A stretch of 64,000 nt of DNA from Azolla caroliniana (Eukaryota; Plantae; Polypodiophyta): the NCBI GenBank assembly GCA_043228905.1, contig JBHGNT010000016.1, positions 1,674,001 through 1,738,000 of the forward strand. The letters run 5' to 3'. The notes below the pieces were generated by a model. The model saw nothing but the letters and a program-made list of their open reading frames with translations. It did not search any database and was not told the origin of the DNA. A program made the position numbers and the translations under genes. Shown here one piece after another: positions 46,926 to 64,000 of this stretch. Numbering within the stretch: position 1 is the first letter of the stretch; the number at the start of each line of letters is the position of its first letter.

Positions 46926-47270
46926 GTGAACAAGAATGTAGTAAATACCATACATGGAAGTGTGAACACAGATTTAAGTACCCTGATATTGTACTGTTTC
47001 ACAAGAGAATCTTGGTGATGTACTACTATCATTGTTTTGCATTTGATCATAGATACATTACAACCACCACCTTGCTGTCATCCATAGGCCATACTTAAAG
47101 AACAACTAATGTTAACATTTCAACTAAGCACCAAAAATATACCATTGGAAAATCCACTCACGCCAAGATTACAAAATATAATAGCAATCTTTACCCATTG
47201 CCAGATGTAAAATATATAACAAGCTCCTAAACATCCTAGAGGAAGATTGCCCCATATCAAAATTTCACAA

Positions 47271-47721
47271 TTAAACAGTTTCAATTTCAAGACCATATGC
47301 TTGGAAGTAATCGCGAAATTCTACCCACTCAATATCTCCATCTCCATTTGCATCGAGTTTACTGAACATATCATCCAATAGCTCCTGCAGACGAATATCA
47401 ATTTCAAGCTTTCAGGTTACAAAGAAATGCTAACGAATTCTTCCTTATACAAGATGGAAGAATGAATGTATTTGAAATCATCCTTGGAAAATAATTTCAT
47501 TTCATCCAGATAGTGAAATCAAAATTCTAAAACAGATTTTTGGACATTCATGGGAAAAAAATGTATAACATCTTGGTTCACTTGTCCAGGGCAATATGTT
47601 CTAGAGTGCGACCAAAGTTGCCACTTGAATTCAGGTTTGAGGGAATCCATCAGAATGAAGCCAGACTCTCCCGCAGCAGATCCATAGTCCATCGTTTTGG
47701 AAAGCAGGTAGTCCGCGCGCG

Positions 47722-47756
<35 letters not shown>

Positions 47757-50034
47757 GGAATTATGAAGTTTCATTTCTTGAGAGGATTAGAGCTTTACTT
47801 TACAAACCTCATTGCTAGTAGCAGCTTGCATTAGACATTAAATTACCAGGATATTCAGCCATATTAAGCTAATATATCATATGCTTCCATGAGGCGTTAA
47901 ATTAATCAAGATTATTAGCCATAATAAGCTAATATATTATGCGCTCATTTATTATTATTTGACATTAAGCGTTTATTCCAACTATAACATGCGTCTGCCT
48001 ATGATTTTCTCAATCTACTTTCTGGTGTGATTAGGAGCATCAGATTTAACTAAGCATACACAGGTAATTATGAAACCTTTTGAATTTTTAATCTATGAGC
48101 ATATTTCAATTATTTTTTCAACTAAATATATCAACCTCAGGCACATTGCGATGACCACATTTTATCTCCATTAGGTCTTCCATCATCATCATTAATTCTG
48201 AACGACTAAGCTTTGCATCAGCATCAAGGTTGTATCTATCCCAGATCCTGCATTTATGAATTAACATACTTGTTACTAGTTGGGTTCAAATGCTCTGTTT
48301 ATTGTTTGGTCATAAATTCAAGGATCTAATGGGAAGGACCTTCTTAAGTCTCCTATCTGAAGCCTAGACTTCTCCAAATGGCAGAGAAGATCCTTGCTAC
48401 ATGAAGCCCATGATGCAGACAAATAATCTGAAGATTGCATATGAATGAGACGTGATACAGTACGGTTGAAAGCAAATTCTTCATCTTTTTCTTCATAAAG
48501 GGAGTTCTCTCCCTTCAAAATTTCCTTCTCGATACTGAAAACAAATAAAGCAAAATTTCATGGCAATCATGGTAAGTATTGCTTACTGATAATTTATCTA
48601 AGCATACCTTGTCATATATAAATCCCTTGGATCCACGCTTGCACTAACTACTAGCTTTACCCTCTGTTAATAAAATTTATATCTTGAGTATAACCTGATC
48701 ATCATCTATTCTAAATTCCACAAGAATGTAAATTGAATGACATTAATTATGTTAGCTCTGCGAACTGCTATAACTCATCAGAGAACTCACATGAGTAATC
48801 TCCCAAATTGAGAATAAAGTAGAATTATTACAGATAGCACACATGATATATATATATATATTATGATGATATTAGTTGCCGTTAATATTAATCAGATAGA
48901 TGGTCAATATTATGATCTCAATACTCCCAAATATCAAGAATTGTAATGGGTATACGCAGTTTGTTCATTAAATTGATTTTGGCTGCCAGGGAGTTTACTG
49001 TATACAAACACTCATATTACCTGTGCATTGAAGGCATAATTTAAATCCACCTTTTCTGTAAATTTCCTATTCAATCTGTAATTACCCCTTAAAATTGTAC
49101 CCTTATGTATGTTAAAGTTGTATACTAGGGATCTAGAAATAAACTTATATTTCACATGACAGAGTATACATTTCATGTGTTTCAATTTACGCTTAAATTA
49201 TAAATTTCTACGGATAAATAGCAGTAGCATCTAATCTTGTGCACTCTAGTTGTGCGAGTTCATAAGAAAGAAACATCAGAAAAGTTTTTATACCTGTTCG
49301 TAAAGGACATCAACAAGAGTAATAAATCTCCTTACCTAAAATGAATAAAGAAGAAGAATCACACCGCATATAAATATCTAAAATGGGAGCCATATTTTAT
49401 GGGATTCATCTAAAATGATCATCAATACCATCTCATTGTGAGAAGAAGTCAATTGAGGTATATTTGCTATAAAGAGGGTATGGAAAGATGCAGCAATGGC
49501 AACATAATCTGATGCTCCTTTTGGCAAGCCACAAAGGTCCACAAAATCAAAATAGGCAACACCTCCAGCAGCCTTTGGAACTGAGAAGCATCAAACCATA
49601 AATACTCATGAAATGGAAGAATGCAAAAGGAGCGTATTCAATCACCAACTAAAATTTGGATCCATAACCTTGGATCGCTCGTGAACCTTGTCTCAATACA
49701 ACAGGCTCTATAGGTCGATCATCTGCTAATCGCATAAACATGTTTTCAAGATCAGAGGCAGTCTCTGCGTTCAAAGGTTTGTACCAAACAGTACATAGTG
49801 CACTGTAGAAAAGTATACGATGAGCTACTTTTTCTAGAGCATGAGTAAGTTTAATAGAGACACATCTGTTCCAGAAAAATAATCAGCACAAATAACTAAC
49901 CTTTTAGTATCTGGGGGTGAACTTATCAGTCGGTAGTCTATACATGTAGGGTTGAAGGCATGAATCTCACAACTGCGTTTTATAATTTCAATACAAGGCA
50001 AAAATAGATCCCTTTGAAGACCATTCTTGTAGAG
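47271..50034 (-). CDS. AFG1: AFG1/LACE1/ZapE-family ATPase with C-terminal EF-hand pair (3' eight exons; 5' exons not in window)
   Basis: Exons 50034-49901, 49802-49669, 49580-49429, 49335-49294, 48663-48608, 48534-48340, 48247-48136, 47384-47271, all GT-AG and in phase. AFG1 motifs LYKNGLQRDLFLP, IDYR, FDFVDLCGLPKGASDY, RRFITLVDVLYE, EEFAFNRTVSRLIHMQS. EF loops NLDADAKLSRSE and DANGDGDIEWVE. Confidence 0.88.
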
Positions 50035-51729
50035 CTGCCAAAACAAAATATAACTAGATGCATCACAGAAGATACCAACAAAAAAGTGCAATTAGCACAA
50101 CGGCAAATGCAGAGAAGGAAATCTATTAATTAAATATACAACAGGAAAATGAAATACAAAATAATGATTATATTGTAAAGACAATACTCATTTCAAAAAC
50201 ACCTACTTGGTCTTATACATATACCTGTGATATTATCTTTTCTTAGCTCTTATTGGATAGTCCAAATTAAGGTAAGACCAGGAAACACATGTAAGGATAT
50301 AATCAAATAATTCCCATCTCAAGTTATTCAGAATCACTCTACATCTAGGATTATTTTAAATAGATCAAAATGTTACCAGTGACATGGGGTACAGTATGAT
50401 AACATCACATGTTTATAGCGAGGATTCCTCAATCTTTCTTAAGAGCTCGGCATCTGAATATGTGTAGACAAGGCTTCATATCACACAACAGGGCCATTCC
50501 TATCTCCATTTTTTTAAATACATCAACATCTAACTACAAATCATAGTTAAGATTTGGATGAAAATTGCATGAATAAATGTCAACATAAATACTTGCCTCA
50601 AGGTTTCTAGTTATTCCATCTTGGCTGTTATAGTCTATATGAGGATAAATGAATTAGTGTTGTCTACAACCCACTAATCTCCATCTACACAATTATATCA
50701 GCTGCTTATCAATCTCAAGATTTGGATGAAAATTGCATGAAACAATATCAACAAAATACTTGCATCATAGGCAAAAGCATGAAGCTATTTCATCTTGGCC
50801 ATTTGTCAGCAATGGATTCATTTCCAGTATATGCTAGGAAAACAATTCAAGAGATTATCAAGTATAATGTTTTGGAAAATGTCATTGACTATTCATAATG
50901 ATGGGAAAGTGGAATCCATTTCACCAAATCCACTGAGATGTAACAACAATTTCCCAGGATTCCTATAGAAACATTTAAGCTCCAATCTTACATATTAGAA
51001 ACGGAAAGAAAAGAGGTTGATGTCTGGTGCATTAAATATGAAATCCTAGGATTTGATGGATTATTATCTAAGTCAATCATCAATATATGCAAAGAAAAAT
51101 ATGCGCAAATAACCAGTGCTATCTTTAACAGAAATCCTTCATATTTGTCCGTAATACACTTGTGCTTTGAGTGCTTGCGGCATTTTATGTTGCATTAGAA
51201 AGGTTCTTATCGTACCTTTTATGATTGTTCTTTGTGGATGAGCTTGTGGGGCTGTACTCTTGTCCTTCAACAACTTTTCCCTGTGCCTTGAGTTCTAGCA
51301 AGAAAAGTCCCAAGCACCGTCGGTCTTCATGTTCCATTACCTTGCGTCGGTAATGTTATCTCATTCTTATTTCATAAAAGACAGTATCATGACAAACATG
51401 GTGTTTTTCTGATTCCACTCCTTGATGATGCAATTGGCAAATTCTTTCTTCTAGGGGTATTCGTGCATATATGCCTACCTCAATCTCTACCTGATGTGAC
51501 GAAGTTTGATCTGCCATACACACTACACAGCGCATAGGATAGATATATGTCCACATAAGATGGCCTGATGATGAATCCATCCTCCAATGTGTGTAAAAAT
51601 TGAGTTTTATAATGACCCATCTTCGTACCAAATGATAATTTGCGGTTAGTCCATGTTATCTTCTTTGCCAAGTTAAGAATATCAGTTCGGATCACTCTAT
51701 TCTTTTCCACTTCAGTCATTTTTAGATGG

Positions 51730-54700
51730 GGATAGTCCAAGCTATATTGGAATGGAGTGCATTTATGTTTATGCCATATGACTTGAACCAATGTTGTATA
51801 CAAACACTACCTAATCGGTACGAAGGTCATAATAAAGACGGATTGTCTTCCAATGCTCGGGATGATATCAAGGGAGAGTTGAATGGGAAAGATAGTGCGA
51901 CAGCAAACTTAGCCATGCTAAGACTTAGTCGTCTACCGATACAGTTGCGTGGGAAAGATAGTGGCAGATAGGAGAGAGTTGAATGCTAATGAAGCTAAGG
52001 AGCTCTTTTAACGACTAGGAGTGAAGCTCTTCCTTATGACTGCTTACAACTCAGAAATAAAAGAGAAAATAGAGCATGGGCATGGGCTCACAATCAAGGC
52101 TATGGTCAAAGCCTGTGATGGAAGAGTTGGAGATTGGCCCTGATTATTGCCTTATGCCTTATGGGCAGATGGAACTATAGAAAATGCAGGGATCTAGACC
52201 AACTCTCACACAACAAGATCACTTGGAAGAGTTAAGGAAATATCAGTAGATTAGGAAAAAACGAGCATTGATTACAAAGATGTAGAATGGTTTATATAAC
52301 CAATTTCTACAGGTAGGTAGAAACCCAACAGTCACTTTATTAGGTTCACACTATTATAACTATATTCACACCTAACAACTACTTAACTAGGTTCATACTA
52401 TTCTAAGTATGTTCACACCCAACAATTACTTAACTAGGTTCACACTATTATAACAATGTTCACACCAAAGCTTTCATAGGATACACATTAAGTGTAACAA
52501 ACCCCCCTGAAGTGAATGGTGTGGACTTGAATGTGGTCACTATCTAGGTGTTGGAGAATGCCCAATTCCTTGTGAAAATATTCAAACTTTTCTCTTGATA
52601 GAGCTTTGGTGAAAATGTCTACAACATTTTCATGAGTTGGTACGTAGACCAAGTTTATCTCTTTAGCATGGAACTGCTCCATAGGAGAGGCTGAAATCCA
52701 TAGTGCCTTTGATGTAACAGAAAACTCGCTTGGCTGCTTGCCAATGCTTTGTTCCAAGGCTGTGCATAAACATGCTTAATTGCGAAACAGCATATTGAAT
52801 GTCAGGTCGCGTGTTGCACAAAAATATCAAACATCCTACAGCTTGCTGGTATAAGAGTACATCAGTTGGTTCTCCTTTGTCTTGGTATGAGAATTTGAAT
52901 CCTGCTTCTACAAGAGTGGAGATTGGCTTGCAGTCTTCAAACCTGAATCGTTGTACGAGCTTCTTGATGTAGTTTCCTTGACTGAGAAAAATGCCCCCGT
53001 CAACAGTAATAAATTGAATGCTGAGGTAGTAATGGAGATGACCAAGATCTGTAAGTTCAAATGTCTTAATAAGATCAGCTTTGAAATCTACAATTTCTTG
53101 CTCATCAGGTCCTGTGATTAGCAAATCATCAACGTAAATCACAACAATTAGTAATTTTTCTCCATCCCTTCGAACATAGAGAATGCTTTCAGTTGGGCGG
53201 TTTACAAAACTGAGTTGAAGAAGATGAGCATGAATCTTTGCATTCCATGCTCGAGGTGTTTGCTTCAAGCCGTACAAAGCTTTATGTAACCTGCAAACTT
53301 TAGTTTCTACACCTTTAATGATAAAACCTGGAGGTTGAGCTACATAAACCTCTTCTTCTAAATCTCCATTTAAGAAGGCGGTTTTAATGTCTAATTGGTG
53401 AACCTTCCATCCCTTACCTGCTGCTGCAGCAACTGTAGCTTTGATTGTAGTCATCTTTGAAATGGGGGCGAAGATTTCTTTATAGTCTATCCTCTCTTTT
53501 TGGGAACAACCTTTTGCCACAAGTCTTGCTTTAAAACAATTAATGCTTCCATCCGCATTACGCTTGACTTTGTAAATCCACTTGGTGGCAATTGCTTTTC
53601 TACCTTTAGGTAGATCACATAACTCCCAAGTGGTGTTCTTGTAGATGGACCCAAGTTCTGATTTCATGGCTTCAACCCAATGGTCATGTGTTAATGGTCA
53701 AGAGTATGGTAACAAAGTATCAAATGCATCTGGTTGATCAACAACTGGCTCTTCGGAGCAATCCACAAGTGGTTGAGTTGCATTTTCAGCAAATATCACA
53801 TCTCGGCTGATGATGATCTTACCTGTAGTGGGCTGAAACAACCGATAACCTTTGTTTTCTTTGTTATAGCCAACAAAGATGCATTTTGTTGCTTTGTCTT
53901 GAAGCTTATGGCGTTACTTGAAGCTTATAAAGGTTGTTGGACAAACTACTTGTTATGACAATGATATCGCCCTTTGTACGATCATGCATTGTGCATTTGT
54001 CATAGAGAAAATGGACAAGGTTTTTCTTTATGCCAGGAACATAGAGGACATTGTTCAAGGTGACTACGTCTCCATTGACAGCTGTAATATGAACTTGACC
54101 AATGCCTTTTATGATGTAAGAAGCATTATTTGCACAAGTAACAGTGCCCGCCTTATGGCAAGCATCTTCAAGTGTAACAAAGAAATTTTTACAAGAAGTT
54201 ATGTGTTTAGAAGCACCGCTATCAAAATAACAAGCATCCATAGAGTCACTTACCGATAAACATACGTCATCCTTTGAGGGATCATACATTGTATGTATCG
54301 AGAATGCCCACTCATGTTGAGCAATGTCTGCTTCTACCTTCATACCAGTAGAGGTGGTAACATTAAGACCAGATTGTTTTTTCTTCTCTTCACTAGCTTT
54401 CCTTTTTCGACATTCGCTAATATCATGGCCTGGTTTACGACAATAATTGCACCTTATCTTCTTCTTCTCATCATGGAAAGTCGAGGCATCATTGCCTTTA
54501 GAAGGAAGGTTATTTTGTTTTCGTCCTTGTTGGCCTTTGAACTTGGAAGGGGTAACAAAAGCTTGATCACCACTATTAAGAACATCTCAATTTGCTAAGA
54601 TCCTTGATTTTAGTTCCTTGAAGTCCTTGATTTTTGTTAAGAATGCGTCCATGGATTCAGCTTCTTGCATCCTTGTTTCTTCAAGTTGTCGCTTAAGTAT

Positions 54701-56123
54701 AGCGACTCTTGCTTCATTCGTTTGAGCATACAGGTTCTTTAACACATCCCATGCACTTTTTGAGGTTGTGCAAGATCGGATATGTCGAACAATGTGACGT
54801 TTGACCGATAATGCGATGAGAGCATGGGCTTGAGCGTCCTTAACATCCCACTTAAGTTGTGAAGAAGTGGATTGTTGAGTGGAGCTTGAAGCATTGTTTG
54901 CGTCCGTTCTTGAAGGGGAGGGAGAGTTTGGAGAAGAACTTGAAGTTGGACGTTCATCGGATTCGACGACAATGTCCCATAGTTGCTTTGCTACCAGTAC
55001 ATGTCTCATCATGTACGCCCACATAGGATAGTTAGTACCATCCAACTTGTCTTCAGCATTAAGCATACTGAAAATATTAGTTTGCTCAGCCATTGCAGAA
55101 GCAAGAAATATGGATGAGATATTGCAGTACTTGGTGGTTATATTCACCAAAATGTAATAAAGCAATATAATATTGAAGAAATAGATGAGAGAGATAAGAG
55201 TTACTCTGATGTGCTGAAAACTTATTTTGTTGTGGTAAAAACTGGTTGCTGTAGTTAGGGTTTAAGACTACTACAAAATTTGTTTTGACTGTACCTCCAA
55301 AACCAAAAATCTGATTTGACCGTACAGGTAGTCAGAAGAATCGGCTCGTAATCTACTTTTTGAAAATGTGAAAATAGGGAAAGATCGCCTTTGTTGCAAC
55401 TTTCTGTTGTTTGAACTTTCGTTGTTGTAGATGGAGAGGTTTGATGTCTTCTTAGGTGGGAAAGAGATCAACAAAAAGATCTGTGTATGCCTATTTGGAA
55501 GGATAGGATAGAGAAAGCAACCTAAACTTGCTCTGATACCATATGTAGAAAATGCAAGGATCTAGACTAACTCTCACACAGCAAGATCACTTAAAGACTT
55601 AAGACTTAAGGAAATATCAATAGATTAGGAAATGATGATCGTTGATTACAAAGATGTAGAATGGTTTATATAACCAGTTTCTACAGGTAGATAGAAACCC
55701 AACAGTCACCAAGTTCACACTATCATAACTATATTCCCACCTAACAGCTACTTAACTAGGTTCATACTATTCTAAGTATGTTCACACCTAACAGTTACTT
55801 AACTAGGTTCACAGTATTATAACAATGTTCACACCAAGGTTTTCATAGGATCCACATTAAGTGTAACAGGAACCACCCACAATTCAATGCCAAGGTTCAT
55901 GCCAACCGAGCTCATGTAGGAGCAAAAGCTGGTGATACACTTCCAAGAGACGATCACCTCATGGGAAGCGATGTTATCGTAGGAGAATGAAATAAGCCGA
56001 GAAGAGCTTCTGACAACAAGGATAAGACAACTAGAGAGAAGACCAGAAGACTTCCAGTTGGCACTGGGAGGTTTGAAGCTACATGGGTCAAAAACAAGTG
56101 TAGATTCAACAAGACACACCGAC
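51730..56123 (+). mobile_element. Degraded Ty3/gypsy pol (RNaseH plus integrase), split by the copia at 52176-55868
   Basis: YKHYLIGTKVIIKTDCLPMLGMI, IVADRRELNANEAKELF, VKAC..WP.LLPYALWAD | TTHNS..FMPTELM..EISREELL..RIRQLERRPED..NK.RF.KTHR. Confidence 0.75.
52176..55868 (-). mobile_element. Ty1/copia LTR retrotransposon with both LTRs, internally deleted (3.7 kb)
   Basis: LTRs 52176-52499 and 55544-55868. TSD GGAAC at 52171-52175 and 55869-55873. PBS TGGTATCAGAGCA (55541-55529) and a PPT next to 52500. gag, protease (YFDSGASKHIT) and RT (YVDD) are present; most of integrase and RNaseH is deleted. Confidence 0.95.
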
Positions 56124-58349
56124 CGTGCCATCCCTTTGGTTACCAACCCACCCCCCGACCACATCCCCCCACCTTCTAGTAACCACCACGCCCGCACAAA
56201 CCCATGTAAAGTAAAGTAAAAACTCCACACATACAAGAGAAGGGTAAAAGCATAATAGAGACCCCAAACCTGGCCCCGAAACACAAAACCCTTAGAAAAC
56301 CTGCCCATTCCCACTCATTTTGAAACTATTTGCCAAGGCTCTATCTTAAATACGGTTCTTAGGGAACTACTAGGAAACGCCATAGAGCCCAGGAAATGCT
56401 TCACAAATACGAAACCAACCTCAAAGAAAACTTTATCTCTAACTCCCTTCGCATTAACCCTCCTAGAATAACAAACAACAACGAAAACCCACAAAACACC
56501 CTTAACCAAAAACTCAACGATCTCACATCCGAGTATCATAGAAACTGCAGTTTAACCGTAATAGAAGCACAAAAATCCCTAGCAATGAGTTTCACGGAAA
56601 CCATTAAGAATTTCCCTAGCATAATAGAAAAGAAAATCCAAGGCATTGTAACATTGCTCTTGGATATCCCTCTTCACAACCTCACCACACCAATGGGAAG
56701 AAAAACTCCAACATTGGAAAAACGAAACTCTTACTAAGTTTAACAGCAACCTAGAAAAAGACACTTTAGAATTTAGCATACAAATCTCACTAGAGGCTAA
56801 AACTAAAGCAGCCAACAAATCGGCCTAAGACACCATCATATCCAAGTCTATGACTGTGGACAAGAAAAAAACAGTAAACACATTAATAGGTAACGGTTTA
56901 AAAAAAATCAAGAACCAAGTAGATAACTATCTCCAACACTTTTTAGACAAAATCAATAAAGAGAACCCAAACTTTCGTCCAAAAAACGGGGCACCGCACC
57001 TGCCAAAAAATAGGGGTGCCCCAAAGACACACAACCATACAAAAACACCACATATCCCCCACTATCCCAACCTCCTTCTCAAAAGCCTAGTCCTTGATCC
57101 CAAACTGTGGGCAAAACTATGCACATCCCATACCCCATACGCACCCAACATTCGTCCCTATGAGTGCACCACCCTTCACCTTCTTATCTCCACTTATGAC
57201 TCAATCGAGCCACCCCCAACTGCACACCCCCACACCTTCAAACCCACCATACGATCTCTCCCAGGACTGCAGTCCCACGGCCTGCACCCTATCTCCGACC
57301 CTCAACCTATCCCCACACCACCAACACTCACAGTACAAGACCAAAACTAAACCCCTACCAAAACCACACAAAACACCTAGATATATAGACTTAGGAAACT
57401 ACATTGGCTCCCACTTCTCCAACCATCACTCTACCTCAACATTCTACTAGGTAGGCAAACCCTCCTAACTAGAAAATAGAATCACAAATTACTCACTACA
57501 CAACCTTAGCTCCTTGCACCTCCCTCCCTCCCAAATCAAACTCTTAAATTTGGGACTAGATTTCATCCCCCCACCCAAAACCATTAAAAAACAACACCTA
57601 ATAAATGTCATCACATCCCTATATAAAACCTACCATCTTAGATTCTTTTTTAGAAATTCTACAAACCTTATCTCCCCATTTAGAATCCCAAACCCTAGTT
57701 GGAATCCCCCACCCCCACCATACATTACCCAAACCATCACATCTATTGCCTCCGCATTCCCTCCCCCATCTACTACACAACCTCACTCCGATAAAAAGTT
57801 TAGAATCACACTGCAAAACCTAAAAAACAATCACGACATAATCATAACACCCACTGACAAAAATCTAGGCACATGCATTCTCTCCAAAGAGTAATATCTT
57901 GAGGAATGCTTTAGGCAACTTAATGACAAAAACACATATACCCCAGTGGAAGAAGTCCCCCTTAAAACTCTCCAGCGCCGGCTCGAACACCTGTCTCAAA
58001 GCATCTCCTCACCTCTCTAAAGAGGAAATTAGGTTTCTCCTTTTGAAACCTAAACATGGCTTCCACGTATGCCGTTTCTATATCATCCTGAAAATCCACA
58101 AACCCAAAGTAGGACGCCCCATTTGTGCTTACAACGACTACGTTTTTTAACAAGCCTCCAAATGGTTACAACATCTATTACAGACCCATCCTACTATCCA
58201 AAAAACAACACCTTAAAGACTCACAAACACTCATTGAAGACCTAGCACACCACACCTTCACCAAATCTTTCACACTCTTTACTTTTGACATAGTATCATT
58301 ATATCCTAGTATACCCACGGAAGGTCTAATAGTCTTTAAAAAAACATAG
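56124..58349 (+). mobile_element. Penelope-like retroelement (PLE), N-terminal region plus RT to just past motif A, degenerate
   Basis: HNLSSLHLPPSQIKLLNLGLDFIP, LKNNHDIIITPTDKNLGTCILSK, RFYIILKIHKPKVGRPIC and LKDS..LI...LFTFDIVSLYPSIP are diagnostic PLE RT motifs. The sense strand is strongly C/A-rich. Confidence 0.85.
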
Positions 58350-58498
58350 TATTAGACCTTCCGTGGTAGGTATACTAGGATATAATGATACTATGTCAAA
58401 AGTAAAGAGTGTGAAAGATTTGGGGAAAGTGTGGTGTGCTAGGTTTTTCACGAGTGTTAGCGAGTCTTTAAGGTATTGTTTTTGGATAGTAGGATGGG
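58185..58498. repeat. About 147-bp inverted repeat of PLE RT sequence with an 18-nt spacer
   Basis: Arms 58185-58331 and 58350-58498; spacer GTCTTTAAAAAAACATAG. Confidence 0.93.
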
Positions 58499-58504
58499 GT
58501 GTAG

Positions 58505-61500
58505 TCCGTCTGTGCCATCTGTGGTGGCGTTTTTCTGCTGTTGAAAAAACAAATTTCTGCGTGTTTTCTTTCTCTACGCAGTTTCAGTTGTGTTTTTTTT
58601 CTGCTTCCAAGTCGATTCAATCCTAGAAAAAGCCTCCTTGAGTCTTCCAAGACATTCCTATAACCCTCAGAAATCATATTTGCTTCCCTTTTCTCTTCAC
58701 TTGTTCATCTTTCAAGTCAAAGAGGTACGTTATTCCCTTCAGCAGTCCATTTTTTACATCAAAACGTGTTTATCCACGGCCATGGCTGAGAACAACGATG
58801 TATTTCGAATGCTTGCTGTTGAGGATAAACTAGATGGAACAAATTACCCTCTTTGGGCTTATATGATGCACCATGTATTGGTAGCAAAGGGGTTGTGGAA
58901 TGTGGTTCAAGGGGCTGAAAAACGTCTTGTTGTTGAGAACACTAATGCTGATGGTACTGATTCTGTTGAGGATGTTGATCATCCTGCTCATGCCCATGCT
59001 ACAGTTTCTATTGTACCAACTGCAGAGCAACTTTGTTGGGATGGCAGAGATGCTCAGGCACATGCTTTGATAGCTTTGTCTGTGAAACGTGCCATTATTC
59101 CCCATATTCGCTCTTGTAAGACAGCAAAGGATGCTTGGGATACTCTTACCACTTTGTACCAAGCGAGAAATGAGGCTCGTGTTGCTTATCTCCAAAAACA
59201 ATTGGAGAGCGAGCACATGAATGAAGGTGATTCTATGGACAGTTTTCTTACAAAAATCAAAGATGCAGACCATTCTAAATGGTCTTCCTGATTCATATCA
59301 GAGTTTTGCTTCTACTCTTCGTTTAATGATGAAAGGCAATCCCAATGCCTTATCATCCGAGGAGCTAGTCTATGTTTTGTTACAGGAAGATCAGTCTAGG
59401 CAAAACAGGTCTATTATGCGTGTTGCAGATCAAGCTTTCCTAGCTAGTCAGAAGGGCAAAGGTAAATGGAACTCTTCTGCTAGCAAGCAAAGATTTGCTA
59501 ATAATTCACAAGTGAATGAAAAAAAACAAGAGCAGAAACAAAAACTGTTTTGCAAATATTGTAAAGGAATTGATCATATTATAAAGAACTGTCCAAAATT
59601 GGCTGCAAAAGAGGCAGGACTCGTTGTTGCAGAAGTCTCTACACCAAAAATAGAGTCTGCAAATCTTGTGCAGAATGAAGAATGGGCATTTACTACTGTT
59701 TGCAGTTTTGACCCATCTTCACTTGAACAATGCATGTCTGTTGTACAATCAGATGTTTGGTACTTCGATAGTGGGGCAACCAAACATATTACCTCGCAGC
59801 GCAATTTCTTCACTTCATTGGAGCCTGCCCCTACAGGGAATACTGTCACATGCGCCAACAACTCATCTTATCCAGTTATGGGTGTTGGTACGATCATTTT
59901 GACTACTGCTGATGGTAGTCCTTTCATCTTGTCAGATGCTTTGTTTGTGCTAGGGATCAAGAAAAATCTGTTGTCAGTTTCAGCATTAGCCAAGGTTGGC
60001 TTGGTTGTTAAATTTGTTGATGACAGGTGTACAGTTCATGATTTGTCCAATGGGGATGTTATCATTGCTTCTGGCATTTTATGTTGTGGGCTGTATAAGC
60101 TCATAGATTATGAAAGATCTATAAATGATTCAGCCTGTGCAATACAGGATTCTCAGGCTATTTCAGATGCAAAGATTTGGCATGCATGCTTGGTCATCTG
60201 AATTTTGCAAGTTTGCTTCGCCTACAAAAATCTGAAATGGTGTCCTCCTTGCCCAAACTTGAGGCACCTCGGAAGCATGTTTGTGAAGGCTGCATTTTGG
60301 GCAAAATTCACCGTTCATCCTTACCAAAAGATGGTTCAGTTCGAGCTACGCAGAAATTGCAGCTTGTTCATAGCGATGTCTGTGGTCCTATGCAGACACA
60401 TTCTCTTGGGAACTATCTTTATTTTGTGACTTTCATTGATGACTTTTCTAGGCATGCATGGGTATATCCATTGAATGCAAAGTCCGAAGTGTTTCTGTGC
60501 TTCAAACAATTTCTAGCTTTGACTGAGAATTTGTCATCATGTAAAATGGGCACCCTGCGTTCTGATCGAGGGGGGGAGTATATGTCTTCTAAGTTTAATG
60601 CATTTCTGGCTGAACGTGGGATAAAACATCAGTGCATAGTGCCATATACACCTCAACAAAATGGAGTTGCTGAAAGAAAGAACAGGTCACTCATGGAAAT
60701 GGCGAGGTGTATGGTCAAAAGTCAGGCCTTACCACATAGTTTCTGGCTTGAGGCTGTCATGTGTGCAGCATATGTACTTAACAAGTGTCCCACTAAAGCA
60801 CTGCACTCTATCACTCCATATGAAGCTTGGCATGGCCAAAAGCCATCTGTTGCTCATCTGCGTGTTTTTGGTTGTTTGGCATATGCATTAGTGCCTAAAC
60901 AACAACCCAAAAAATTGGATGATAAAGCAGTGAAATGTATTTTTGTAGGATATAGTTCTGAAAGTAAAGGCTATCGTCTGTATCATCCACAATCTAAACG
61001 CATTTTGGTTAGCCATGATGTTGTTTGTGGAGGATGCAATTCAGCCACTTCTTTCATGTATGAAGGAGACATCAGTTAGCTCCAAAGATGTGTATGACAC
61101 TTTGTTGCCTCTGTTTACAAGTGGACAATTAAGTGTTGACCCACTTGAGGCACCTTCTCAGCCTTTGGAAGTTACTCATAATGATGCAGATCATTCCATT
61201 TCTGATGCAGATCAGTCTATTTCTGATGTAAACTTACATGATGCACTTATTAATGAGAGGGCTGATATAGAGGAGGCAAAGACTGTGCCTAGATGGCTGT
61301 TGCAGACTTTGCAAGACAGTAAATTGGATTTTCCTTTGCTATACCGTACTCGTTCAAGTTATCATAGTGCTTCGTTTGCATCAGATTGTTATGCAATGGC
61401 TGCCTCTAGTCTTTGCAATGAGAATGAGCCTGTTTCTTTTGATGAAGCAAAAAATTCAAAAAATTGGATGGTTGCTATGCAATCAGAATATGATGCTATT

Positions 61501-63200
61501 ATGAAGACTGGTACATGGTCTTTATGTGACTTGCCTCTTGGCAAGAAGGCTATTGGCACTAAGTGGGTATATAAGCTAAAGCGTAAACCTGATGGAACAA
61601 TTGACAGGTATAAGGCTAGGCTTGTTGCGAAAGGTTATGCCCAAGAAAAAGGCATTGATTTTGATGAGACCTTTGCTCCCACCTGCCCTATGACTACTGT
61701 TCGTAGCATCTGTGCAATTGCAGCTCATCGTGGTTGGAATGTACATCAGTTGGACATTAAAACAGCATTTCTAAATGGTGATCTTCATGAGGAAGTGTAT
61801 GTATCCTAGCCCCGTGGTTTTGTGCAAAATGGGCATGAACACAAAGTGTGCAGGTTGCGAAAGGCATTATATGGCTTGAAGCAAGCACCACGTTCTTGGT
61901 ATGAAAAGATACATGCCTATTTGATTGCATTTGGGTTTGAGAATAGTCCAACTGAAAGCACCTTATATGTTAAGCATGCTGATGATGTATTTCTGATCAA
62001 GGTTGTGTATGTCGATGATATGTTGCTCACTAGTCCCAATGAGAAGCATATTGCTGATTTTAAGGCTGATTTGCATGCCTCCTTTGAGATGTCAGATTTG
62101 GGGCATTTGCATCATTATTTGGGCATTCAATTCATGCAAGTTCATGGTGGAATAGCTTTGTGTCAATTGAAATACATCGACACATTATTACAGCGTTTTG
62201 GCCTTGAAGACTGTAAACCTATTGCCACTCCCATGGAAACAGGTTTACGTTTGAGCCTTCATGATGCTGGAAATGTATTTGATGCTGTTCTCTATCAGCA
62301 GGCAGTTGGATGCTTGCTTTACTTATGCATAACCCAACCTGACATTCAGTTTGCTGTCTCTCAGATGAGCAGGTTTATGCATTACCCAGGAGTTAAGCAT
62401 TGGCAGGCAGTTAAGCGCATCTTTCGCTACTTGAGTGGTACCTGGTCATTTGGGTTGTTTTATCCCAAGGGGGGATCACTACCGCCAGACCTGCATGCTT
62501 TTTCTGACTCTGATTGGGCTGGTTGTTATGACACTCGTGTGTCCACAAGTGGTTTTTGCTTCATGCTTGGTAGCTCATGCATATCTTGGTTGAGCAAGAA
62601 GCAGCCTACTGTGGCCACTTCTAGTTGTGAGGCTGAGTATAGGGCAACTTTCACAGCTACAGTTGAGTGTGTGTGGCTCAGACGCCTTTTAGCTGATTTG
62701 GGTGTTGGTCAGTCTTCTGCCGCCACCATCTTCACTGACAGTCAAAGCGCAATTGCAGTTGCGAGGAACCCTGTGTTCCATGTGCGACTAAGCACATTGA
62801 GGTGCATTATCATTATGCCAGGGAAAGGTTCTCTGCTGGAGAGATCAGATTGGCTTATGTGCCCACGCAGGAGAACATTGCAAACCTCTTCACAAAGGCT
62901 CTGCCTAGGGAGAAGTTTGAAGCTTTCCACAAAGCTTTAGGACTAATCCCATTTGTGGATTCATCTCTATCCACATAGCTTGACACTTGTTTAACCATGA
63001 GTGTCAGCTCCTTGTTCACCGCATCACTCCCAAGGGGGATTTGTTGACATATTTTGGTAGTGATGTGTGTGAACACATTTAGGACAATAATGTGTGAACA
63101 CACTTAGGACAGTGATGTGTGTGAACACACTTAGGACTACAGGGGCATTTTTTCCCTCTTTAGGAGGTTTTTTCCCCCTGTCTAAAAATACTCTTGTAAC
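58505..63200 (+). mobile_element. Ty1/copia element (gag-PR-IN-RT-RNaseH), 5' LTR/PBS missing, 3' LTR truncated
   Basis: gag from ATG 58782, CKYC..H...C knuckle, WYFDSGATKH, integrase HSDVCGP/FIDDFSR/NGVAERKNR, RT YVDDML, RNaseH FSDSDWAG. Frameshifts and a stop at about 61807. PPT AAGGGGGA at about 63032 and LTR starting TG at 63042. gag closely resembles that of the 52176 element. Confidence 0.92.
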
Positions 63201-63339
63201 CCTAAAGTGGAGTAAGCTTTTTGGGATTCAAAGCAAGAACCCAACAGAAAATAGTGAAAGTGGGAGGGGTACAGTAAAATGTAGAAGAGAGGAAGGAAGC
63301 GTAGAAAGTAAAAACAGTAAAAGTAGAAGAGAGGCAGAA

Positions 63340-63780
63340 CTTTGAAATTTTCTCTCTACCCCTCCCCCTTTCCCTTCTATTTTTCACTCTAATCCCTCCC
63401 CCCCCCTTTTTTCTTCTTTACCCTCCTATTTCTCCCCCCTCTCATTTAGCTTTCACTTTGTTATTTTTTCACTCTACCTCTCCCTTTTCTTTTCTAAATT
63501 TTCACTTTACCCCTCCCCCCTTTTCACTTCTAACTTCACTCTACCCCTGCCCTCCTTTTTTTACCTCTAAATTTGCGTCCTACCCCTCCCCCCTTCTCTT
63601 CTAAATTTCACTCTACCCCTCCCCCTTACTTTCCTCTAAATTTCACTCTACCCCTTCCTCTTCTTTTTTTAAATTTCATTCGACCCCTCCCTCTTTTACT
63701 TCTACATTTTTTACTTTCTACCCCTCCCTCTCTTCTAAATTTTACTCTGCCCTCCCGTCTTTTATTTCAACCTTTTTCTC
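63340..63780. repeat. Pyrimidine-rich TTTCACTCTACCCCTCCCC minisatellite, same motif as 26385-27600
   Basis: About a dozen degenerate units seen directly. Confidence 0.85.
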
Positions 63781-64000
63781 TCTAGAATCTGTAACGCTTA
63801 AAATGCCCTCTCTCTCTTCTGCTTTTCCAAGATATTCCCTCTTATTCCTCATTTATTGTGCATGTTTGATAGTACAAGAGTCGCTTAACTACCAAAAAAC
63901 CATTTCACACATGTTTCCCAATTTTGTATAAATAGGCTATACCGGCCTCTTTTGTAATAACTTTACTTTTGCTGCTAGTTGCAAACAGCTCTTTGGCTGT

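Follow-up and report, generated by a model that had tools for sequence, protein, structure and literature searches.

Can an AFG1-type AAA+ ATPase carry a pair of EF-hands in its own chain, and would calcium then act on it directly? The question is raised by a locus of the fern Azolla caroliniana (assembly GCA_043228905.1, contig JBHGNT010000016.1, positions 1,674,001 to 1,738,000), where a gene on the minus strand runs from 50034 to 47271 of the 64,000-nucleotide stretch analysed here; this whole stretch is referred to as the window, and all coordinates are those of the window. The AFG1, LACE1 and ZapE proteins are conserved, poorly understood helpers of respiratory-chain maintenance. A first-pass annotation had noticed that the reading frame continues beyond the usual AFG1 terminal motif through two further exons encoding EF-hands. 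We find that the locus is an expressed AFG1-type gene ending in two EF-hands, whose ligand residues have been under long-term conservation. The explanation that we consider best comprises three parts: a nuclear gene of a seed-free vascular plant, intact and transcribed, has its 3' two-thirds in the window; it belongs to a subfamily of such fusions; and its product is a calcium-tuned ATPase. Taken as a whole, this explanation appears probable to us.

Gene structure

The gene model comprises eight minus-strand exons (A to H), and a frame check of the joined exons gave one shared open frame ending in TAA. AG precedes and GT follows each exon, and all introns have GT-AG borders. Searches with the spliced model took its exons one at a time and kept them separate. 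In the Pfam scan, exons A, C, and F jointly spanned positions 171–359 of the 361 of the AFG1_ATPase profile (PF03969) in the correct order; the gathering score of 27 bits was reached singly by exon A (28 bits, profile 171–210) and exon C (35.1 bits, profile 256–302), and exon F scored 22.9 bits (profile 331–359). The exon coordinates, motifs, and junctions proposed by the first-pass annotation all proved correct.

Exon A (49901..50034) encodes LYKNGLQRDLFLPCIE... of the AFG1 domain; it has both an AG acceptor and a GT donor and is the first exon within the window, but not the first of the gene. Exon B (49669..49802) holds the variable middle of the domain and is collinear with full-length homologues, and exon C (49429..49580) holds the conserved core (AAGGVAYFDF...SFHTLF), with 38–42 of 50 residues identical to the fern-clade homologues P0015, P0016, P0022, and P0020. 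The 14 codons of exon D (49294..49335; VRRFITLVDVLYEQ) match the fern homologues in 13 of 14 residues, and exon E (48608..48663; RVKLVVSASVDPRDLYMT) also aligns with the homologues. The AFG1 domain ends in exon F (48340..48534), where EEKDEEFAFNRTVSRLIHMQSSDY represents the C-terminal motif D/EExFAFxRTxSRLxEMQ and is followed by a conserved linker of approximately 25 residues (LSASWAS..KDLLCHLEKSRLQIGDLR). Exon G (48136..48247) then encodes EF-hand 1 (EF1) and an inter-EF linker (IKCGHRNVPE), and exon H (47271..47384) encodes EF-hand 2 (EF2), the C-terminus, and the TAA stop.

Transcript evidence

Seventeen public runs contain about one fifth to one quarter of the sampled words of 47200–50100, a stretch of which exons make up about one third. 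Read contigs from four runs, representing four studies and three organism labels, were mapped to 47100–50400. The RNA label of these runs is a guess ('RNA?'); contigs that lack introns and join at GT-AG borders are the pattern expected of spliced RNA. All seven introns were skipped by contigs at the predicted GT-AG sites. The two junctions flanking exon G, 48247/48340 (exons F–G) and 47384/48136 (exons G–H), were present in contigs of all four runs, as the first-pass annotation predicted, and junction 49802/49901 (exons A–B) was likewise seen in four runs. The contigs also contained junctions 49580/49669 (exons B–C), 49335/49429 (exons C–D), 48663/49294 (exons D–E), and 48534/48608 (exons E–F), covered a 3' untranslated region (UTR; 47100..47270, minus strand), and extended past 50036 into an upstream AFG1 exon. 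The junction evidence is far above chance expectation.

Record 17 of run X3 (1072 nucleotides) contains all eight exons, H to A, in one molecule. Past exon A it has 54 further letters, which in gene sense read VTSSNRAPDE and lead into the LYKNG of exon A. VTSSNRAPDE/LYKNG corresponds to the homologues' SSNRAPxELYKNG, the segment just after Walker B. Because this record spans exons A to H together with the SSNRAP segment, the EF-hand exons are part of an AFG1 messenger with more AFG1 exons upstream. The in-phase continuation of the frame after the AFG1 end motif was thus borne out by a contig spanning exons A–H.

The same contigs bear on the idea that the fusion is an artefact, in which EF-hand exons of a neighbouring gene have been joined to the ATPase by chance reading or by chimeric assembly. 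We found nothing in favour of this idea, save that exon G searched alone had no Pfam match. It is contradicted by the occurrence of the F–G and G–H junctions in runs of four separate studies, by the single contig from A to H, and by the annotation of the same collinear protein in more than 12 other genomes or transcriptomes. The spanning contig and the collinear homologues refute the artefact, to which we assign practically no probability, and the single A–H contig also excludes that the EF-hand exons belong to another transcript. A transcript that reads into the F–G intron and stops at 48318, which the first-pass annotation had named as a way in which the fusion could fail, was ruled out as well: no contig of the four runs reads through or covers this intron, and it was skipped in every run.

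The comparison of the window with the runs listed seven exon differences, five of them synonymous and none in exon G or H; exon G did not differ by a single letter in any run. The introns and the 3' UTR differed frequently. We count this pattern, mostly synonymous in the exons and variable in the introns and the UTR, as a sign of selection on the gene.

Some further features of the region were recorded during the mapping. Two alternative acceptors were seen at low depth, one at 49722, 80 nucleotides into exon B, which would cause a frameshift, and one at 48710, 47 nucleotides upstream of exon E. One contig of run X1 continues past exon A (50035) with 106 letters (CGTGACAAGGGG...) that match neither the intron sequence nor the upstream exon usually found there; the contig may be chimeric, or the letters may come from an alternative 5' exon. 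In the 3' UTR, the 43 letters at 47126–47168 are replaced by 11 different letters (CACGCCCAAAT) in three of the four runs, with a contig joint at 47125/47169. It is an indel polymorphism, either between accessions or between species. The G–H intron contains a (TA)n(TG)n(CG)n microsatellite at 47709–47761, which was masked as a repeat in the read mapping.

The EF-hand pair

The EF1 loop (NLDADAKLSRSE, 48231–48196) reads N-L-D-A-D-A-K-L-S-R-S-E, with N, D, D, and E at positions 1, 3, 5, and 12, respectively, and without Gly6; the EF2 loop (DANGDGDIEWVE, 47354–47319) reads D-A-N-G-D-G-D-I-E-W-V-E. Both loops have the features of a 12-residue EF loop: oxygen ligands at positions 1, 3, and 5, Glu12, and a hydrophobic residue at position 8. 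Exon H scored above the Pfam cut-offs of EF-hand_1 (28.9 bits versus 25.4) and EF-hand_6 (26.7 versus 25). In the Selaginella orthologue P0001, EF-hand_7 covers both hands (33.5 versus a cut-off of 30), and the region equivalent to exon G lies under EF-hand_7 and EF-hand_1. A search of exon H against the PDB sequences found Entamoeba CaBP, SCaMC-1, and calmodulin, all proven calcium binders, with E-values from 1e-11 to 1e-7.

The conservation of the loops was read from an alignment of 36 subfamily members. The EF1 ligand positions 1, 3, 5, and 12 are retained in 33–35 of the 36, from land plants to haptophytes, and EF2 is retained across land plants and degenerate in many stramenopile members. 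The first-pass annotation had called the second loop fully canonical and the first nearly so; family-wide, it is the first that is more conserved. The segment between the hands, GHRNVPEE, is near-invariant from haptophytes to ferns and more strictly conserved than the calcium loops, a pattern in the alignment that suggests a contact surface.

These observations also bear on a different interpretation of the tail, in which the pair is a pseudo-EF-hand, a module that acts without calcium, either structurally or by binding proteins, to promote oligomerisation or to hold a partner. Several features speak for such a module: land-plant EF1 starts with N and has A, S, T, or H in place of G at position 6, many stramenopile members have lost the EF2 ligands, and a contact surface would be expected to show the strictness seen in the GHRNVPEE segment. 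However, the retention of the four EF1 ligands in nearly all members from land plants to haptophytes, the retention of both loops across land plants, and the canonical score of exon H, with proven Ca2+ binders as its nearest relatives, argue against it. We consider a calcium-independent module unlikely and prefer a pair that binds calcium.

The fold of the tail was examined using an AlphaFold2 model of the orthologue P0016, computed with a 36-row alignment and having a mean pLDDT (predicted local distance difference test) of 79. The N-terminal 37 residues are disordered in the model, the ATPase core is confident, and the AFG1 end motif lies on a long helix. The linker holds two short helices and is followed by two helix-loop-helix units with pLDDT values of 81–91, the helices being residues 474–484/494–509 and 516–526/536–546; both loops contain strands that form short beta bridges. 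A Foldseek search with the P0016 model found IstB, DnaA domain III, and DnaC/DnaI, general AAA+ neighbours, as the nearest solved folds; neither this search nor a PDB sequence search with exon C found a solved AFG1/ZapE relative. Searches of a protein atlas gave no usable matches with exon F and, with the P0016 tail, generic EF-hand clusters only, below 0.8.

Orthologues in seed-free plants and algae

A phmmer search with exon F against 1.84 billion representatives returned eight matches. The best was XP_024527350 of Selaginella moellendorffii (P0001), a protein of 543 residues named 'AFG1-like ATPase isoform X2', with which exon F shares 69% identity over residues 411–468. P0001 consists of an AFG1_ATPase domain (4.7e-97, 325.6 bits) followed by the EF-hand pair. 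A subfamily emerged from searches with the P0001 tail and from searches with aligned full-length proteins, to which the window exons were added as separate rows. The same architecture was found in ferns (Adiantum and Ceratopteris), mosses (Physcomitrium, P. patens A0A2K1KUX4, and Ceratodon), liverworts (Marchantia and Calypogeia), the hornwort Nothoceros, the prasinophyte Cymbomonas, brown algae (Ectocarpus, Scytosiphon, Choristocarpus, Discosporangium, and Undaria), the yellow-green alga Tribonema, the labyrinthulid Hondaea, the haptophyte Haptolina, and many marine sequences. The first-pass annotation had thought of a subfamily and proposed a search across green plants and algae; that search shows the architecture to be widespread in seed-free plants and algae. 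The novelty that it implied for the architecture did not hold, since the combination of PF03969 with PF13499, PF13405, or PF00036 is already stored as precomputed Pfam matches for many organisms. RefSeq and UniProt catalogue the fusion and recognise both of its domains, though with automatic naming only, usually as 'AFG1-like ATPase' or, for several members in UniProt, 'EF-hand domain-containing protein'.

In the alignment, the window exons are collinear with the full-length subfamily proteins. Identities summed exon by exon are 60–73% to the land-plant clade and highest to the fern group: 73% for P0015 and P0016, the latter within the Adiantum/Ceratopteris clade and the former its sister, 70% for P0022, 67.5% for Adiantum, 66% for Selaginella, 64% for Calypogeia, and 60% for Physcomitrium. 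This order agrees with a fern as the source. The tail length also separates the subfamily. EF-type proteins extend 104–168 residues beyond the FAFxRTxSRL motif, whereas fungal and animal AFG1 proteins have 13–24 residues after it. The complete land-plant models have a tail of 110 residues, except for three liverwort models (104–108), and the exon count of the window gene gives 36 + 37 + 37 = 110 residues, including the linker KCGHRNVPE. In addition, genomic open reading frames of liverworts, a hornwort, and mosses are interrupted at ...GDLRR and, a second time, after GHRN/YVP, with the sequence continuing at (I/V)WDRYN and at ELVDDMY, respectively; exon F likewise ends in ...GDLRR. Because the breaks of the reading frames coincide, the two introns flanking the EF-hand exons are common to the window gene and the bryophyte genes. 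Compared with these seed-free plant and algal entries, the window gene has the same architecture, the same 110-residue tail, the same GHRNVPE linker, and the same intron positions, and we found no essential difference. On this sequence comparison, the window gene is a further orthologue in a catalogued but undescribed AFG1 variant; the databases searched did not contain a full-length protein of its own species.

Phylogeny and distribution

A maximum-likelihood tree was computed from the ATPase domains of 70 proteins after removal of their tails, with neither the window gene nor angiosperm AFG1-like proteins among the rows. The land-plant EF-type proteins form one clade with an SH-aLRT (Shimodaira–Hasegawa-like approximate likelihood ratio test) support of 100, and with Cymbomonas and two further sequences the support is 98. 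The stramenopile and haptophyte EF-type proteins lie on the opposite side of a branch with a support of 97. The space between the two is taken up by bacterial ZapE and by the short forms of fungi, animals, and slime moulds, on a backbone without resolution. The tail state changes four times on the tree; three of the four changes are single short rows within EF clades, which look like truncated models or motif misses. The tree is compatible with either a single or a multiple origin of the EF tail. In either case, the tail is old.

The suggestion in the first-pass annotation that the subfamily may be absent from angiosperm models fits the results, as no seed-plant member was found in the searches made. 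None is among the eight phmmer matches with exon F, among the tail-only search results with candidates of 299–950 residues, or among the best 120 of 7701 profile matches, whose scores go down to approximately 355 bits; a truncated Marchantia paleacea model scored 513 bits in the same profile search. A tail-only search with candidates of 87–278 residues, which was sensitive to single-exon open reading frames including those of the window itself, also found none. The absence of the subfamily from angiosperms is well supported, because very many angiosperm proteomes are in the databases, and that from gymnosperms is less so.

The 5' part of the gene

All full-length orthologues carry GGVGTGKS (Walker A) and CFDEFQV (Walker B). 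Motif scans in six frames across the whole window detected neither a Walker A or Walker B exon nor one of the SSNRAP type, and tblastn of full-length homologues against the whole window found nothing upstream of exon A, leaving residues 1–204 of P0001 unmatched. The 5' exons, which include those for Walker A and B, are located beyond the window end at 64000. Since no 5' exons were found up to 64000, the intron preceding exon A (50035..64000, minus strand) is longer than 13.9 kb.

This intron is filled with retroelements, and the locus might accordingly be a truncated dead copy that has lost its 5' half among them, the transcripts coming from an intact paralogue elsewhere. The lack of a Walker A/B exon within 14 kb upstream and the retroelements in that space agree with such a copy. 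The transcripts do not: run X3 matches every exon with 0–2 differing letters, all seven introns are removed at the locus's own GT-AG sites with the frame open in all eight exons, and some runs include contigs with the locus's own intron sequence (48643–49323). We regard a dead copy as very unlikely, and an intact gene with a long intron remains our interpretation of the locus.

Two of the retroelements were delimited. A decayed Ty1/copia-type long terminal repeat (LTR) retrotransposon lies on the minus strand at 52227–55868; its gag, integrase, and reverse transcriptase frames are broken by stops, and its LTRs of approximately 270 nucleotides (52227–52499 and 55601–55868) are 92–94% identical. 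A larger copia-type element lies on the plus strand at approximately 58590–62940 in the same intron, with gag, integrase, and reverse transcriptase open reading frames of 233, 326, 300, 264, and 372 amino acids.

Discussion

The function that we find most likely for the fusion is to place an organellar AFG1 ATPase under calcium control in cis, and we give this reading about an even chance. The protein would probably be imported, its destination being the mitochondria alone or the plastids too. In the homologues, the N-terminal 45–70 residues are basic, contain many Ser/Thr and hardly any acidic residues, and have low model confidence; they look like organellar presequences. In the organelle, AFG1 would help the turnover or assembly of respiratory-chain subunits. 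Ca2+ is probably bound by the EF-hand pair; EF1 would serve in every lineage, with EF2 contributing too in land plants. This binding may alter the way in which the tail packs onto the ATPase or onto a partner. The Ca2+ level of the organelle could thereby tune ATPase activity, oligomerisation, or substrate handling.

Several points weigh against this interpretation. The N at the start of land-plant EF1 and the missing Gly6 may lower its affinity, and the degeneration of EF2 in many stramenopiles means that the pair could partly be a structural module. A complex prediction with the P0016 core (residues 40–455), its tail (residues 456–553), and two Ca ions gave a score of 0.00; controls were absent, and the prediction lends no support either way. 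Calcium binding, organellar location, and an effect on the ATPase are inferred. With the Walker A and B exons located outside the window, the open frame is established for exons A–H. Finally, the absence from seed plants rests on annotated proteins, and the sparse gymnosperm proteomes make it weaker for that group.

The characterised relatives, yeast Afg1, human LACE1/AFG1L, and the trypanosome and bacterial ZapE proteins (PF03969), share the ATPase domain with the window gene down to EEFAFxRTVSRLxEMQ. The AFG1/LACE1/ZapE proteins, which reside at the inner membrane of mitochondria, interact with Oxa1 and influence both how respiratory complexes are turned over and how active they are (PMC7314023, PMC12464808). 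A role in mitochondrial inner-membrane proteostasis is presumed to be shared by the window gene. Unlike the window gene, these relatives end 13–24 residues past the motif and have no EF-hands, and in the ATPase-only tree their domains fall outside the green-lineage clade of EF-hand forms.

A functional parallel may be Arabidopsis AFG1L1 (At4g30490), which the accounts of Bussemer et al. 2009 given in PMC4844381, PMC6471148, and PMC3758327 describe as a calmodulin-binding AAA+ ATPase of mitochondria and chloroplasts. As described there, AFG1L1 resembles the window gene as a plant-organelle AFG1 ATPase tied to Ca2+ signalling through EF-hand proteins, and differs in that its EF-hands come in trans as calmodulin, whereas those of the window gene are in the same chain. 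AFG1L1 is probably not an orthologue of the EF-type proteins, as no seed-plant protein scored near the EF-type clade among the best 120 of the 7701 profile matches. By this analogy, the EF tail of the window gene would be a cis version of the calmodulin binding reported for AFG1L1. The same logic, a sensor fused to an enzyme or carrier that elsewhere uses a separate Ca2+ sensor, is known from CDPK versus calmodulin-dependent (CaM) kinases and from the SCaMC/APC carriers. Their catalytic domains are unrelated to the window protein, so that the analogy is one of design only; the EF-hands of SCaMC-1 and calmodulin are among the sequences closest to exon H.

One evolutionary scenario would connect the two forms: the EF-tailed AFG1 would be the ancestral calcium-sensing form in the lineages of photosynthetic eukaryotes, and seed plants would have lost the fusion but kept calcium control through a remaining AFG1 paralogue, AFG1L1, that binds calmodulin in trans. 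We put this scenario forward tentatively and regard it as doubtful.

We found no paper describing AFG1 or ZapE together with EF-hands in one protein, and the broadest evolutionary study of ZapE/Afg1 that we found does not mention calcium. What is new here is the recognition of the fusion and the hypothesis attached to it; the proteins themselves were already in the databases. Because of the apparent loss in seed plants, the standard models never revealed the fusion. Its interest lies in the link to the calmodulin-binding AFG1L1, in that apparent loss, and in the occurrence of the subfamily in moss, liverwort, fern, and brown-alga models: Physcomitrium, Marchantia, Ceratopteris, and Ectocarpus are tractable and permit a direct test.

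Plant organelles show Ca2+ transients, and according to reviews classical EF-hand proteins are rare in them and no organellar calmodulin is known (PMC4844381); Arabidopsis AFG1L1 is nonetheless reported to bind calmodulin. The fusion of a sensor to the ATPase across the subfamily suggests an old, direct calcium control of AFG1. If the EF-tailed protein is indeed the ancestral form that was lost in seed plants, the fused gene would serve as a 'Rosetta stone' for the EF-hand docking site on AFG1, and it would make a link from organellar Ca2+ transients to the proteostasis of respiratory or photosynthetic complexes directly testable.

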